Below, piece by piece: positions 38,986-55,493 of a DNA stretch of 64,000 nt. The notes beneath the pieces are model-generated. The model was not told the origin of the DNA. It was given only the letters and a program-made list of their open reading frames with translations, and ran no database searches. Source of the stretch: Salpingoeca rosetta (taxonomy: Eukaryota; Protista; Choanoflagellata); assembly GCA_033442325.1 (NCBI GenBank), contig JAWQFM010000010.1:1168867-1232866 (forward strand), given 5' to 3'. The stretch's first letter is position 1. Every line of letters begins with the position of its first letter. Position numbers and translations under genes: made by a program.

Positions 38986-41900
38986 TTACACCTCCGTCAC
39001 ATCGGGTCGAGAGTCGCGCGGTAGCACTTTCTTCGACCTGCGTCTCTTCTTCTTCTTCGTCTTCATCGACATTGATTTCGATTTCGGTTTCTCCCCATCT
39101 CCGAACATTACTGCTCCTTCTTGCTCCCGTACCTCACGCTCACCCATGTCGTCATCATCTTCTCCATTTTGTCTCTCACCAATGCTACCAATGCTGCTGC
39201 TATTGCTGATGCCTTTGCGCTGACTGGCCCACATTTCCTGCGGCGCTGGCTGCTCCTGGCGAACACTGCGCTGTCGCTCTTTGAGTGAAATCTGCCGCGC
39301 CAACACTGATCCTCGCTCGTCGCTGCCAAACACCACGGCACCACCATCATCATCATCATCATCATCATCATCATCGTCGTCGTCGTCGTCATCACCAACA
39401 GCCCCATTATCGTCATCACCAACACCAGCAGCAGCTTCGCGTTGGGCTGTGCGCCCCCGCCGCTGTCGTAGCAGTGCCGCCTCCTTCTCTCGCTCCTCGG
39501 CAACAGCCGTCAGCGGGGAAATGCGATACGACACGCGCGACCCGCCAATGCGGCGGTGGCGAATCAGAAACCGACCCCCACCGCCACCGCCACCACCGCC
39601 ACCACCACTTCCGCTGTTGCTGCCACTGTTGCTGTTGGTTCTTGGTGGTGTGGGCGAGTGGACTGTGATTGGTGGCAGTGTGGTGGGTGTAGACGGGTGC
39701 AGTTGAGTGGTCCTGGTTGGCGCTGTTTGAGCTGGTGGTGCGGACACAGCCGTTGTTGCAGTCGGTTTCGCTGTCGTTGTTGTCGGTATCCTTGCTGATG
39801 TTGTTGCCGCCGGTGTTGCTGGTGAAAGTGATGGTCGCGGCGACACGGCTGCGTCGCATGCAAGTGATATGGACGATGACGAGGATGCGGCTGACTGCAT
39901 GCGCAAATCATCTTGAAGTGTTCGCACGATGCCCGTGTCGAATTCAATGACGGACGAGCCAAAGGACACGCGCTTCTTCTTCCTCCCTGCTGGGTCGTAG
40001 TCACCATCGGCATCATCAGCATCATCGTCGCCGAAACTGCTGCTGGTCACACTTGATGCTCTCCGCAGCGTGCTACTGCTGCCACTACTCTTGCGCAGCA
40101 GCCGGCGAGTCACCTCACCCCCACCATCACCGCCATCGCCATTGCTAGCACTGCCATCACCACCATCGACTCCGTCGCCATCATCTCCATCGCTCCCGTC
40201 CGACGATGACGTGTGTGCGCCCATTCCCACTTCCACGTCAAAGCTGAGTGAGCGATGCTTCCTTCTCTTCCCAAGCATCGGCTGCACACGTGGTGTTGGC
40301 AGCGGTGGTTTTGCCGGTGCCATCATCCCTGCAGTCATGTCGGCAGCAGGGTGCGCCTCAACACTCATGCTCTGGCTGAGCGACGATGATGAAAGCTGGG
40401 ATCTGCCATGGGCGAGTGGGATCGCTGGTAGCTGTCGTGGCAGCGACTCAAAGCTGCCAAACTGGCGTGGAAGCGTTTGCTGACGCCGAACAGGCAGCTC
40501 TTGCTGCTCGGATTCCTGCTCCCGCCTGAACACGTCGTTTGTTGCATGTGTGTGTTGGGTGGGGGGGGGGAGAGGAAAGTTGTTTGATTGATGATGACAA
40601 CACAGACACAAGTGAGAACGAATGCGTGAGTGGGACAACCAACGACCACACATAGTGTGCATGTGCATGGTGGATGTTTGTGAGTGGGCCTGTGACCATC
40701 ACACTTGCACGCGCTGCGGACGGTGTTTGCATCTCAAGCAAAGAAGCGGTGTGCACAGCGTGTGACGCACAGTATCTTGTAGCCGTGAATGGTCTGTTTG
40801 TTCTGTTGCGTCAACTCCCTCACCCTAAAAGCAGAAGAAGCAACAAGCGTGTGATGTGTAATTTGCCCAGGGGGGTGAGTCGGAGCAAGGAAGGAGGACG
40901 CATCAATTCATTCATCACACACGCACACGCGCATACGCGCGCGCGACAGCATGGCGAAAGGGTGAAGGTGGACTGCATGTTGTAGATATTGCAGCGAGTA
41001 CGTACCGTGCTGGCTTTGGCAGCGATTGTGCTAACGATGAGCATGCAGAAGGCGACGCACAAGTGCGTGTGTATCGTGTCAAGGTCAGTGTGCGAGTACG
41101 TGCGGGTGTGTGGTATGTGAGGTGACGTGTGTGTGCAATCCGTGACAAAGAGGGCCAAATATTACATCAGAGACATGTGATCAAGCCAATAAGTAGAAAC
41201 ATCATAACAGCACAGCAATGCCTCCCACATGTGTATCATGACACCACTCACAGAAGAGACTTGGTCTGTTGATATTTCGGGTGAGATAAACACACGAGGA
41301 AGGTGTGTTGTCGTAGGATAACAAGTAGACAACACAACAGTCACAGTAAGGGCAACAACGGGAGCAAGTGGTGAGCATGAAATTGGCATGACAAGCACAG
41401 CAAACACACAGTCAACAACGCTCACACAACATCGCAAGCCTATGCGTAACGCAGCAATTTGTTGCTTCGATACGAAATCATACTCAACACAGACACAGAC
41501 ACACACGCACACACACACACACACACACACACACGCACCGACACACACGTGGTTCACGCAACGCATGCATGCAATAAACACACAACACATTTGAGCAAAC
41601 GTACAGGTGCAACGATGAGGAGAAGCTCTTTGACTCGTCAAATTGCGAGCGTAGTGCCTTTTGGATATCCAGCAGTCGCTTTGTCATCGTTTCCTCCAGG
41701 TCTTGGATGTTTTCGCGCATGTCCTGTTCCGTGCGTTTGATGGACGCCTGGACCTGTCTCACTAGATCCTTGTTGGCGCGGTGGATGGCCGTGATGGTGC
41801 CCTGCCACTCGTTCGTGTCCCGTGTCAGGCCCTGATACAGAGAACAAAGTGAGAATCATGACAGGTATGGCATGTGCATGACGCTTGAGCACAGCGTGAT

Positions 41901-53900: not shown

Positions 53901-55493
53901 CCCCCCCCCCCCACACACACACGCACGCACGCAGAGAGCAATTGGTCGCACCAAACTTGTCTGGTGCAGGGACGTGGACAGGCAAGCAGTGTCTGTTGCG
54001 GAGGGAGTGCCGTCGCGAGAGCTTGGTGACTGTGTCGGGGGTGGTGTCAAAGCGGAGGAGCGTGTATGCCTTGCTCTTGAGTACCACCAGCAGCACGCCA
54101 CCGTCGTCAGAGAAGCACGCCTCCTGGATGGTCGCGGCGGCATCATCACTGATCTTCAGTGCAAGTGCTCCGCGCAGCTCGCCCGTGAAGCTGTCGAAGA
54201 TGGACATGGTGGCATCGGCAAAAACCACGTAGATGTGGTTGTTGCCAAACCAGAACGCGGCCACCGGCGCCTGTGATACCGAATGCACAATTACCTGTCA
54301 TCGGTATCCATACAGGTAGCGAGGTAAGATGAGGCGAGGTGAGCGCAAGGGAGGGGGGTATGGTGTCAGAGGAAAAGCACGACACGCACGTGCAGTGAGT
54401 GCTCCTCGTGTATGTGTGTGTGTGTGTGTGTGTGTGTGTGTGCGAGGAGTGGCCGTGGGCACGTGGCAGGGAGCACGCTTTTCAATCTTCCATGTGGCTG
54501 TGCACAGACCCGCGCAACCAATACCAGTCGGCACCACGGTGACACTCACTTGCTTGCACAGGCGGCGGTTCTTTTTGAAAGCATGCACAAACTTGGCATA
54601 TGCATACGCCGCTTTCCAGTGGCGCCGCGCCCTCTCCCCTGATGCACGTTGTGTGCGTGTGCGTGCGTGTGCGTATGTGTGCGTGTGCGTGCGTGTGTGT
54701 GTGTGTGCGTGTGTGCGTGTGCGTGTGCGTGTGTGCGTGTGTGTGCATGAGAAGCGCCCGGTGTCCACGCGCTCATCGTGGATGGCGCAAACGAGTGAAC
54801 GAGCAAGTACGCACCCACAACCCACCCTACACCCCATCACACACACACACACCTGGAAGATCTGTGTTGTTTCCCTTTTGCACTTCATACTGGTATCGAT
54901 CGTATCGGATGGATCTGCGTTGGAAATGGGGTTGTGACACCACAGCACGTGTTGTCGGCACAATGTCACATACAAACACACACGCAGACATTCGTGCGAC
55001 AGCACTTGCACACACACACACACACACACACACACACACACACACACACACACACACACACACACACACACACGCACACAGGTGACGGTACTTACACGCC
55101 GCGGTGCTGTTGCTGCTGATCCGTGGAATCCTTGACGCGCGCCTCCAGCAGATGCTCTGCCTGCGTCTTCCTGAACGTGTGCCCGCGAGCATGTACATGT
55201 GTGTTTACATGTGTGTGTGTGTGTGTGCGAAGCGATGGAACGATCGAATGCACTGATATGCACAATGTTCGGTGTGATTCGTGTGGAAGGACCACACTCT
55301 CACGTTTTGAAACGACAGAGCAGCCAGCCAAGGGAACGCTGTTACAACAACAACAACAACACACACACACACACACAACGTACTGTTCGTAAGCCGCGAC
55401 ACCGTCGAGGATTTCTTGCAGCAGGTATGGCTGCGTCTCAAAGCTGTTGGCCAGCTTTGTTGCCTTGTCCTTGCCTTCATCGCCGCCACTCAT
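38986..55493 (-). CDS. Large WD40-repeat + ankyrin-like + 6-TM TRP-type cation channel, many exons
   Basis: WD40 repeats: HRDEVVAVALSPKGHHLATGCKDKSARVFD, VYALDYAPNGRFLLIGSDDKMVRLVD, HTKEVYTIAFSSCGSYVASGSRDKSCVILD, HTDHVRTVSFGPENQLITGGLDS. Ankyrin-like TIMHRAVENK and GSDVLTIAH. Pre-S1 VLAFKWDAYARRLF, S1-S6, pore FLLGD, S6 TIFMLNLMINLMSE, TRP-helix-like YEKARIIAELE, then EWQG + coiled coil and a long final exon ending DVTEV*. Confidence 0.85.
43365..43510. repeat. (GAGT)n microsatellite in a channel-gene intron
   Basis: Directly visible. Confidence 0.9.
45255..45562. repeat. (CAA)/(CAC)/(CAT) trinucleotide repeat block, intronic ((TTG)n on the sense strand)
   Basis: Lies between coding ...NVLMKK| and |VLAFKW. 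Confidence 0.9.
52855..53032. repeat. (CAA)n trinucleotide repeat, intronic
   Basis: Lies between coding ...VYANK and YTIKCERVYALD. Confidence 0.9.

Follow-up and report, generated by a model that had tools for sequence, protein, structure and literature searches.

The closest described relatives of the gene analyzed here are the TRPW channels, defined in 2026 from choanoflagellates by Coyle et al. (bioRxiv 10.64898/2026.06.15.732144) and Mannsaker et al. (bioRxiv 10.64898/2026.06.15.732245; PNAS PMC13663828). Both TRPW papers report the architecture from many protist groups and its loss in animals. A tetrameric, domain-swapped and cation-conducting pore has been shown for TRPW1 only. In the TRPW1 structure, the agonist occupies a transmembrane pocket made of S1-S4, the S4-S5 linker and the TRP helix, and the propeller was proposed to be a scaffold for protein interactions (TRPW papers, 2026). 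According to one of the two papers, the channel function of TRPW members is still to be tested.

We analyzed a stretch of 64,000 nucleotides from the choanoflagellate Salpingoeca rosetta (here called the window). One ORF of this assembly matches an S. rosetta protein at NCBI with 100% identity. The locus at positions 38986 to 55493, on the minus strand, almost certainly corresponds to PTSG_04058, which encodes EGD83451 and belongs to the TRP channel family published as TRPW. This whole coding span rests on a gene model, RNA joints and identity to the published transmembrane sequence: the spliced transmembrane sequence of our model is letter-identical to the EGD83451 / PTSG_04058 sequence in the supplementary data of bioRxiv 10.64898/2026.06.15.732144. 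In that study, EGD83451 / EP00044_P007522 is tagged best_subfamily=TRPW with a score of 197.9, and its transmembrane domain covers residues 1205-1432 of the annotated protein. PTSG_04058 was entered as TRPW also in the second study (bioRxiv 10.64898/2026.06.15.732245; PNAS PMC13663828). A published table gives it Ion_trans=1, 6 TM and apparently Ank=0, a presumed reading of unlabelled columns.

Because two 2026 studies already place PTSG_04058 in TRPW, it is not new; this gene combining WD40 repeats with a TRP-type channel is already known and adds no new kind of system. A sequence-only reading of the same DNA had brought up the name TRPW and advised that novelty be checked. The family indeed exists, with PTSG_04058 itself listed in both studies, and the caution was justified. 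The same reading had proposed a non-animal, premetazoan lineage; the proposal was too narrow for an architecture that the papers report across many protist groups and as lost in animals. TRPW channels are biologically important, and their story was published in 2026 with PTSG_04058 named in both data sets. What our analysis adds is an RNA-supported exon map of the channel half of one uncharacterised TRPW paralogue, fold evidence (obtained on a relative) for an ankyrin/linker module missed by profile searches, and the observation that PTSG_04058 is rich in introns and, in contrast to several relatives, shows no reduction in the cRFXa data set.

Gene structure and transcript of PTSG_04058

Our gene model comprises 41 exons with a CDS of 6171 nt and a median intron of 222 nt. 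It encodes ~2056 aa over ~16.5 kb, for which the earlier epithet "giant" is fair. From the N to the C terminus, the order is degenerate WD40 repeats, two to three ankyrin-like repeats, pre-S1, S1-S6 with the pore and the TRP helix, a coiled coil and a low-complexity tail of ~510 aa. The WD40, ankyrin-like and pore modules named by the sequence-only reading were all found where it had placed them, on the minus strand, to which all coordinates below refer.

Spliced RNA contigs and stranded RNA-seq reads connect the WD40 exons 48936-48849 and 48626-48516 with all channel exons through S6. Two RNA contigs, X6 (4114 nt) and X4 (3580 nt), support the splicing of exons 48936 to 42860. The RNA-confirmed introns between 42860 and 48849 are all GT..AG (14/14), leave the frame open and confirm the minus strand. 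PTSG_04058 is a real, expressed single gene, with its WD40 part and its channel part on one spliced RNA. The single transcript, for which RNA-seq had been proposed as a check, was thereby confirmed from 48936 to 42860, the rest of the 55493-38986 span being gene model.

The 5' third of this model and its last two junctions are ab initio predictions. Since exons 55493-48849 were predicted ab initio with the guidance of orthologues, the N-terminal exon model is approximate, and the outcome of ab initio chaining for 55493-48936 varied with the scoring. The chosen 5' model used a codon model from same-genome paralogues together with orthologue bonuses, and this version was kept because its length fits the published residue numbering. 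The proposed start (MSGGDEGKDK...) lies in exon 1 (55384-55493), an ab initio exon whose residue numbering agrees with the annotated protein. The motif PNEDQ, at which the transmembrane domain starts, is at residue 1198 in our model versus 1205 in the annotated protein, so that a start at 55493 and a stop at 38986-38988 fit the published transmembrane position. An alternative start may lie upstream, near 56276.

Gene-model variants that began at 56276 or included microsatellite "exons" were dropped as unsupported. Antisense transcripts, with reads in both orientations at intronic CA repeats, were set aside in favour of repeat cross-mapping. A tRNA scan and a Pfam search of the neighbouring long ORFs gave no match relevant to the gene.

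Domains of the predicted protein

The WD40 or beta-propeller region (47608-54270; ~21 small exons, model aa 113-841) was recognized by a custom WD40 HMM, weak Pfam matches and collinearity with L015, a contig of a relative. The custom HMM, built from same-genome paralogues, found five repeats in the spliced model (aa 263-290, 311-337, 504-535, 690-716 and 731-755), with i-E values from 2.4e-8 to 3e-3. The exon at 48849-48936 (VYTIAFSSCGSYVASGSRDKSCVILDTKS), where the RNA contig ending at 48628 resumes at 48851, was matched by a WD40 HMM at i-E 1.6e-5 in the unspliced frame and is 47% identical to L015. The exon at 48516-48626 (GSQLHRLEKHTDHVRTVSFGPENQLITGG...), joined by RNA at 48318|48516, matched Pfam WD40 at E 1.3e-4. 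Its 22.8 bits are below the cut-off of 27, which none of the single window exons reached; Pfam was run on single stop-free pieces, and the exons, being too short, gave sub-threshold WD40 matches only. The exons at 48849-48936 and 48516-48626 show similarity to the WD40 repeats in other TRPW proteins (E 1e-8 to 1e-4). On L015, the WD40 ORFs collinear with the window exons score 59.1 and 51.1 bits against Pfam PF00400 and precede the channel ORF, an order shared with PTSG_04058. Taken together, the RNA joins, the five HMM repeats and the L015 Pfam matches show that, as in TRPW, one polypeptide carries WD40 repeats ahead of the channel, with single exons sub-threshold. Of the domains for which the sequence-only reading had proposed HMMER searches, WD40 was found with the custom HMM and stayed sub-threshold in Pfam, Ion_trans was found in the relatives P0002 and P0003, and Ank was negative. 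Judged by sequence, the WD40 repeats of PTSG_04058 are degenerate, and their ~730 residues would be enough for up to two beta-propellers.

Downstream, RNA-joined exons 47370-47287, 47122-46997 and 46607-46476 (46476-47370) encode putative ankyrin-like helical repeats. P0002, as modeled by AlphaFold, has paired helices here, with block-mean pLDDT values that rise to 83-86 and drop in between; they fall in the stretch aligned by VIA-align to residues 254-750 of TRPV1. Residue 254 is one that we take to lie inside the TRPV1 ankyrin repeats. Pfam Ank was not found in the window exons or in P0002 and P0003 (E 0.1-1). On the modeled fold, "ankyrin-like" holds for PTSG_04058 as a resemblance only. 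The following exon of 199 aa (45574-46170; VLHSFLEAGDARLFS), fully covered by RNA contigs, carries predicted strands of the linker domain, a low-complexity insert of acidic and basic residues and the pre-S1 helix; it is homologous to P0002 and P0003 and was mapped on the P0002 model.

Helix boundaries of the channel were likewise transferred from the P0002 model, and all six helices and the pore helix map onto window exons. The end of pre-S1 and S1 (44895-45024; VLAFKW..., VLAFKWDAYARRLFFRELFIYFAFVFTFFTFGALIG) are supported by RNA joints and by mapping on the AF2 model. S2, ending in CRQLYRERRQ (44529-44635; …AILVIPQACRQLYRERRQ), has RNA joints and model mapping and is identical to published EGD83451, and the S2-S3 linker, S3 and S4 (44098-44265) are backed by RNA joints, the published sequence and model mapping. 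The RNA-joined exon at 43739-43840, with the end of S4, the S4-S5 linker and the start of S5 (LYFLRAFEAFGALVRMI; LYFLRAFEAFGALVRMIFRVLLLSIPFLTILLIV), is 79% identical to P0002 and fits the family motif LYFLQxFxxTGPLVRMI. The end of S5, the pore helix (ASNIFFNVYNVFLL), FLLGD and the putative filter (GDMG) are encoded at 43212-43349, again with RNA joints, published sequence and model mapping. RNA joint 42989|43212 leads to the end of the pore loop and S6 with MLNLMI (42860-42989; VFVILSLVVTIFMLNLMI), whose L-N and I show little or no variation across the family alignment. P0002 and P0003 share 43% identity with the spliced domain and reach 44.5 and 50.1 bits, respectively, against the 6-TM domain Ion_trans (PF00520, cut-off 25).

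Three small exons (42583-42543, 42384-42320 and 42077-42017; 42017-42583) are supported by homology to P0002/P0003, and NLMSEFMSQVHEE is identical to the published sequence. They encode the end of S6 (42543-42583), the TRP-like helix (42320-42384; FPYEKARIIAELE; GDAFPYEKARIIAELELS) and a post-TRP strand, FPRWLHAL (42017-42077). Mapping on the P0002 model puts the TRP helix EGDAFPYEKARIIAELEL directly after S6, as in group-1 TRP channels; in that model it is a separate helix aligned with the TRPV TRP helix, with the family consensus EFQxLRAxILxExE. A C-terminal coiled coil (41605-41831) is suggested by a long helix in the P0002 model and an ab initio exon, the 3' junction of which (41605|40525) is uncertain because the following intron of 1079 nt is unusually long. 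The last exon (38986-40525), in an open frame from 40698 to 38989 with an ab initio acceptor at 40525, encodes a Ser/Gly/Asp/Arg-rich low-complexity tail of 512 aa and the stop. Pfam found no domain in this tail, which is probably disordered.

TRP type, placement and alternative readings

The PDB sequence search, AlphaFold modeling and fold comparisons were run on the marine relative P0002 (43% identical) and not on the window protein. By sequence, P0002 matched solved TRPV structures (best E 3.4e-9, down to 1e-5), and TRPV-family entries accounted for 60/60 among the matches listed. Its AF2 model, with a transmembrane pLDDT mostly of 80-94 and lower in the pore loop, aligned to TRPV1/2/3/5 with VIA-align Z scores of 19-19.6 (at best 406 residues, rmsd 4.5). 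The best 50 Foldseek matches were TRPV channels and one TRPA1 entry (E ~1e-8). P0002 is thus predicted to have the subunit fold of group-1 TRP channels. By sequence and modeled fold, the pore module of PTSG_04058 is of the TRP type, in agreement with the initial reading.

On a TRPW transmembrane HMM from whose building the window was excluded, the window sequence scored 214.9 bits, versus 67-82 for the TRPA and TRPV-like channels encoded by this genome, a ranking that favours TRPW; most TRPW paralogues scored 280-408. Single-exon ORFs of this genome that carry Pfam WD40 and Ion_trans share 24-27% identity with the window core (E 1e-24 to 1e-30). In our own tree of 36 rows, the window, P0002 and P0003 form a clade (99/97) whose deep position is a polytomy. 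Since the long TRPA branch falls into this polytomy, we did not use the tree as proof of TRPW membership; in an AU test, a single TRPW group that contains the window sequence was not rejected (p 0.448). In the published trees, orthogroup OG_594, to which we infer that PTSG_04058 belongs, is in one clade (91/94) (TRPW papers, 2026). A representative search with the 199-aa linker exon retrieved the relatives P0001 and P0002 only, a word-indexed search with P0002 retrieved P0003 only, and an alignment-query search with a long first row returned that row only.

That a WD40 protein and a separate channel, encoded by neighbouring genes, were misread as one is very improbable. No Pfam domain extends across the junction, and RNA reads support the exons from 48936 down, with 55493-48936 given by the model; however, on RNA contigs, two WD40 exons are spliced together with the ankyrin-like exons and every channel exon in one open frame. 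In addition, the published protein carries its transmembrane domain at residues 1205-1432, and the same domain order recurs on L015 and inside single ORFs of at least eight paralogues. A pore module from another voltage-gated-like family (Kv, CNG or polycystin type) is scarcely credible either. The generic Ion_trans is the sole Pfam transmembrane match in the relatives, and paralogues gave faint PKD_channel matches, but the listed sequence and fold matches point to TRPV (the latter with one TRPA1), in alignments that take in pre-S1, the TRP helix and the ankyrin-linker region.

It also appears unlikely that PTSG_04058 derives from TRPW but has lost conduction of its own and serves as a scaffold or regulatory subunit, possibly a silent one active only in heteromers with TRPW paralogues. 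Such a role would fit a divergent subfamily (215 bits on the TRPW HMM), the degenerate WD40 repeats and the 512-aa tail, as well as the view of one TRPW paper that channel function is unproven. Yet the six helices, pore helix, acidic filter residue, S6 L-N...I motif and TRP helix are all intact, and their conservation in marine relatives (43-79% identity) argues for selection on a working pore.

As a TRPW channel, one subunit of ~2056 residues would consist of WD40 repeats, ankyrin-like repeats with a TRPV-like linker, the S1-S6 pore, TRP helix, coiled coil and tail. If the solved TRPW1 and TRPV channels are a guide, four such subunits would form a domain-swapped cation channel, with FLLGD contributing an acidic filter residue. 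Comparison with known channels further suggests that gating may proceed through the pocket of S1-S4, S4-S5 and TRP helix, and that the cytosolic propellers may be protein-docking platforms. The ligand-sensing cap first suggested for the propellers finds no support in TRPW1, where the agonist sits in the transmembrane pocket and the propeller is the proposed interaction scaffold.

We tentatively consider it possible that PTSG_04058, P0002 and P0003 represent a deep TRPW lineage of their own, which has retained a cryptic ankyrin/linker module of the TRPV type together with an ancient gene structure rich in introns, and which does not take part in the RFX-driven flagellar programme of the TRPW1-type paralogues. 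In that case, a TRPV-like ancestor with ankyrin repeats would have gained the WD40 propellers, and the paralogues without introns would be later products of retro-copy expansion.

Comparison with known channels

PTSG_04058 shares with the TRPW family N-terminal WD40 repeats and a 6-TM TRP-type domain on one chain, a TRP helix and a C-terminal coiled coil. TRPW1 is from the same organism but is a different gene, with the S4-S5 linker residue R950 as opposed to ~1295 in PTSG_04058. TRPW1 has one 7-blade propeller, whereas in PTSG_04058 ~840 aa with degenerate repeats precede the ankyrin-like part. Unlike TRPW1, PTSG_04058 also harbors ankyrin-like repeats uncalled by Pfam and the 512-aa low-complexity tail. 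At least seven TRPW paralogues are intronless, compared to ~40 introns in PTSG_04058, and its mRNA was not reduced in the cRFXa data set (cRFXa_log2FC, +0.29), in contrast to several TRPW paralogues (-1.7 to -3.2).

Among solved structures, TRPV1-6 and the insect channels Nanchung/Inactive are the best matches of P0002, covering the ankyrin-like region, linker, pre-S1, S1-S6 and TRP helix. However, identity is only 13-19%, and TRPV channels have a six-repeat ankyrin domain, where PTSG_04058 has WD40 repeats ahead of a very short ankyrin-like stretch, and lack the C-terminal coiled coil that it possesses. Features that PTSG_04058 has in common with TRPA1 are the group-1 TRP fold (Foldseek match of P0002 to 6pqp, E 1.2e-7), a coiled coil at the C terminus and an acidic residue past the pore helix. 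The true TRPA1 orthologue of S. rosetta is nevertheless another gene, an ORF on contig L022 (E 1.8e-34 to TRPA1), to which the TRPW transmembrane HMM gives only 67 bits.

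The spliced transcript

The window has a G+C content of about 54% and a eukaryotic character, with short exons and CA/TG microsatellites filling the introns. The peptides on which a sequence-only reading had based a WD40/ankyrin-like/TRP-type channel were found in open pieces on the minus strand, 55493-38986. Against Pfam, single pieces gave WD40 matches only below the 27-bit cut-off (e.g., 22.8 bits on 48460-48666), because they are too short.

RNA was mapped to 42800-48750 from two stranded RNA-seq runs and from two runs kept as assembled contigs; the library type of the latter was guessed, but the contigs are spliced. 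The splices in two of these contigs (4114 and 3580 nt) coincide exactly with minus-strand GT..AG introns. The two contigs join exons 42860-42989, 43212-43349, 43739-43840, 44098-44265, 44529-44635 and 44895-45024 on the channel side, exons 45574-46170, 46476-46607, 46997-47122 and 47287-47370 on the linker and ankyrin-like side, and exons 47608-47726, 48021-48070, 48249-48318 and 48516-48626 on the 5' side. Their loose end at 48628 resumes at 48851 in exon 48849-48936 (minus strand), where the peptide VYTIAFSSCGSYVASGSRDKS forms a classic WD40 motif. The raw RNA-seq reads had the same joints, with the first mate on the plus strand in almost all, the pattern that minus-strand RNA gives in a usual stranded library. 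This exon chain has no stop codons, and therefore one spliced RNA carries, in a single frame, two or more WD40 repeats together with the ankyrin-like exons and those of channel segments S1 to S6. The proposal that WD40 and channel belong to one transcript is thus confirmed over 48936-42860.

Reads in both orientations piled up on intronic CA repeats at 46183-46381, 47775-47973 and 48173-48371, where joints of the types 'opposite strands' and 'goes back' also occurred, as did T>G differences at 46297 and 46303. Antisense transcription at these repeats was set aside, cross-mapping of repeat reads being the most likely explanation.

Exons in 55493-48936 and 42583-38986 came from dynamic-programming exon chaining with relatives as guide. 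The final gene model (38986-55493) has 41 exons and 2056 aa, its 5' part being approximate. Since PNEDQ lies at residue 1198, versus 1205 in the published annotated protein, neither the 55493 start nor the set of exons can be far wrong. The final intron spans 1079 nt, an unusual length that makes its junction uncertain.

Elsewhere in the window, open frame 3418-4716 (+) encodes MutS domain I (PF01624, 100.7 bits) and belongs to a neighbouring mismatch-repair gene of the MutS family, and an assembly gap of 100 N spans 5436-5535. The long open frames (408-917 aa) at 56509-59259 (+), 21379-24120 (+), 30978-32402 (-) and 34116-35339 (-), some in G+C-rich low-complexity DNA, had no Pfam match at E 0.001.

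Channel module and relatives outside the genome

HMMER, queried with the 199-aa linker exon, yielded the relative P0002 (803 aa, public read assembly), and a further search yielded P0003, from a JGI metagenome. With each of them the spliced protein core of the gene shares 43% identity (E 1e-98 to 1e-103), and single exons reach 79%. By sequence only, P0002 matched solved TRPV channels (Inactive, 3.4e-9; TRPV1, 5.5e-8; also TRPV3/4/5/6 and Nanchung) from pre-S1 past the TRP helix. The AlphaFold model is of this relative (residues 30-650, 28-row family alignment as input) and not of the window protein; its mean pLDDT was 68, mostly 80-94 in the membrane domain and lower in the pore loop. Its best 50 Foldseek matches were TRPV channels and one TRPA1 entry, and VIA-align superposed residues 6-531 on TRPV1 254-750 with Z 19.6 over 406 residues. 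We take this TRPV1 segment to begin within the ankyrin repeats and to take in the linker, S1-S6 and TRP helix. The TRP assignment therefore held by both sequence and fold.

When the elements of the P0002 model were carried onto the window exons by pairwise alignment, each helix fell where the sequence-only reading had placed it, in line with its full 6-TM pore module. Helix pairs in the N-terminal part of the model fall within the VIA-align span; no sequence profile calls Ank in Pfam searches of the window exons, P0002 and P0003. Of the proposed ankyrin-like helices, what stands is a structural resemblance in the model, and 'ankyrin-like' holds in that sense only. The gene is expressed, and its intact 6-TM TRP-type module, with pore helix, acidic filter residue and conserved S6 motif, is accompanied by a TRP helix and by a coiled coil.

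In a marine relative (a JGI contig), the entire channel half lies in one 2.9-kb ORF. ORFs 5' of it on the same strand pass Pfam WD40 (59.1 and 51.1 bits) and align collinearly with exons of the window between 53721 and 47287. This arrangement shows the WD40-ankyrin-like-channel order to be conserved in another organism, with few introns there. In our tree the window gene, P0002 and P0003 form a strongly supported clade (99/97), deep branching being left as a polytomy; an AU test did not reject a single TRPW group that takes in this clade (p 0.448).

Paralogues in the same genome

The paralogue survey covered the window's assembly (55.4 Mb, 68 contigs). Seven or more ORFs run uninterrupted over 1163-1633 aa and encode strong WD40 propellers, then Pfam Ion_trans and a coiled coil; the core of our gene is 24-27% identical to them (E 1e-24 to 1e-30). 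One of them matches an NCBI protein from Salpingoeca rosetta with 100% identity, which identifies the organism. A TRPW transmembrane-domain HMM, built from paralogues with the window sequence left out, scored the window at 214.9 bits, versus 67 for the genome's TRPA1 orthologue (L022, E 1.8e-34) and 82 for its TRPV-like channel; locus L024 is weakly TRPV/Inactive-like. Further ORFs with TRPW-type transmembrane domains (193-408 bits) are L018, L019, L020, L021 and L023 (contigs C3, C36, C20 and C25), L023 also having Pfam WD40. The closest paralogue found in this genome, at G000:C24:1150300-1150800 (L002, L004, L013), is also intron-rich, with exons 'ILYFLRAFEFTGGLVRMVFKV' and 'CYRQLKNEYRQ'; P0001 (220 aa) resembles the linker exon of its subfamily. 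The gene under study is split by some 40 introns (median length 222 nt, rich in CA/TG microsatellites), whereas at least seven paralogues (L005-L011) are single ORFs. Together with the one-ORF channel half of the marine relative, this is a hint of intron gain or loss, or of retro-copy expansion, within the TRPW family.

The gene within the published TRPW family

TRPW was defined as TRP-related channels with WD40 domains, 17 of them in S. rosetta; the WD40-plus-channel architecture was found in 184 eukaryotic taxa, none of them animals (Coyle et al., bioRxiv 10.64898/2026.06.15.732144). The same clade was independently named TRPW, with 18 S. rosetta members, 14/18 with WD40 (Mannsaker et al., bioRxiv 10.64898/2026.06.15.732245; PNAS PMC13663828). 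The window peptide LYFLRAFEAFGALVRMI has exact matches in the published supplements, and the spliced model is identical to the printed 228-residue transmembrane sequence of EGD83451 (EP00044_Salpingoeca_rosetta_P007522), entered as residues 1205-1432, best_subfamily=TRPW, score 197.9 (supplement, bioRxiv 10.64898/2026.06.15.732144). EGD83451 is PTSG_04058 in the published supplement, and the table of Mannsaker et al. (bioRxiv 10.64898/2026.06.15.732245; PNAS PMC13663828) gives it as TRPW with WD40=1, Ion_trans=1, Ank=0 and 6 TM, provided that the unlabelled columns follow the paper's own listing of domains. The gene had therefore been annotated, classified and published before, and the finding is already known. 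The 'TRPW' channels of choanoflagellates named in the sequence-only reading are thus real, the family having been published in 2026 with PTSG_04058 listed.

The cryo-EM structure of TRPW1 has one 7-blade propeller, a TRP helix and a coiled coil; a bacterial lipid activates this flagellar channel, which controls flagellar beating (bioRxiv 10.64898/2026.06.15.732144). By analogy with the TRPW1 and TRPV structures, four subunits would form a domain-swapped cation channel, gating may proceed via the S1-S4/S4-S5/TRP-helix pocket, and the propellers could be cytosolic docking platforms. The sequence-only observation was thus borne out and its interpretation supported, with the exception of the ligand-sensing propeller cap.

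Our gene is not TRPW1, since its S4-S5 linker lies near residue 1295 and that of TRPW1 at R950. Its WD40 region is much longer and more degenerate, with 5 repeats recognisable in ~730 residues. It is also distinguished among the paralogues by a 512-aa low-complexity tail and by its introns, many TRPW paralogues having none. In the cRFXa_log2FC column of the supplement it stands at +0.29, whereas several TRPW paralogues range from -1.7 to -3.2.
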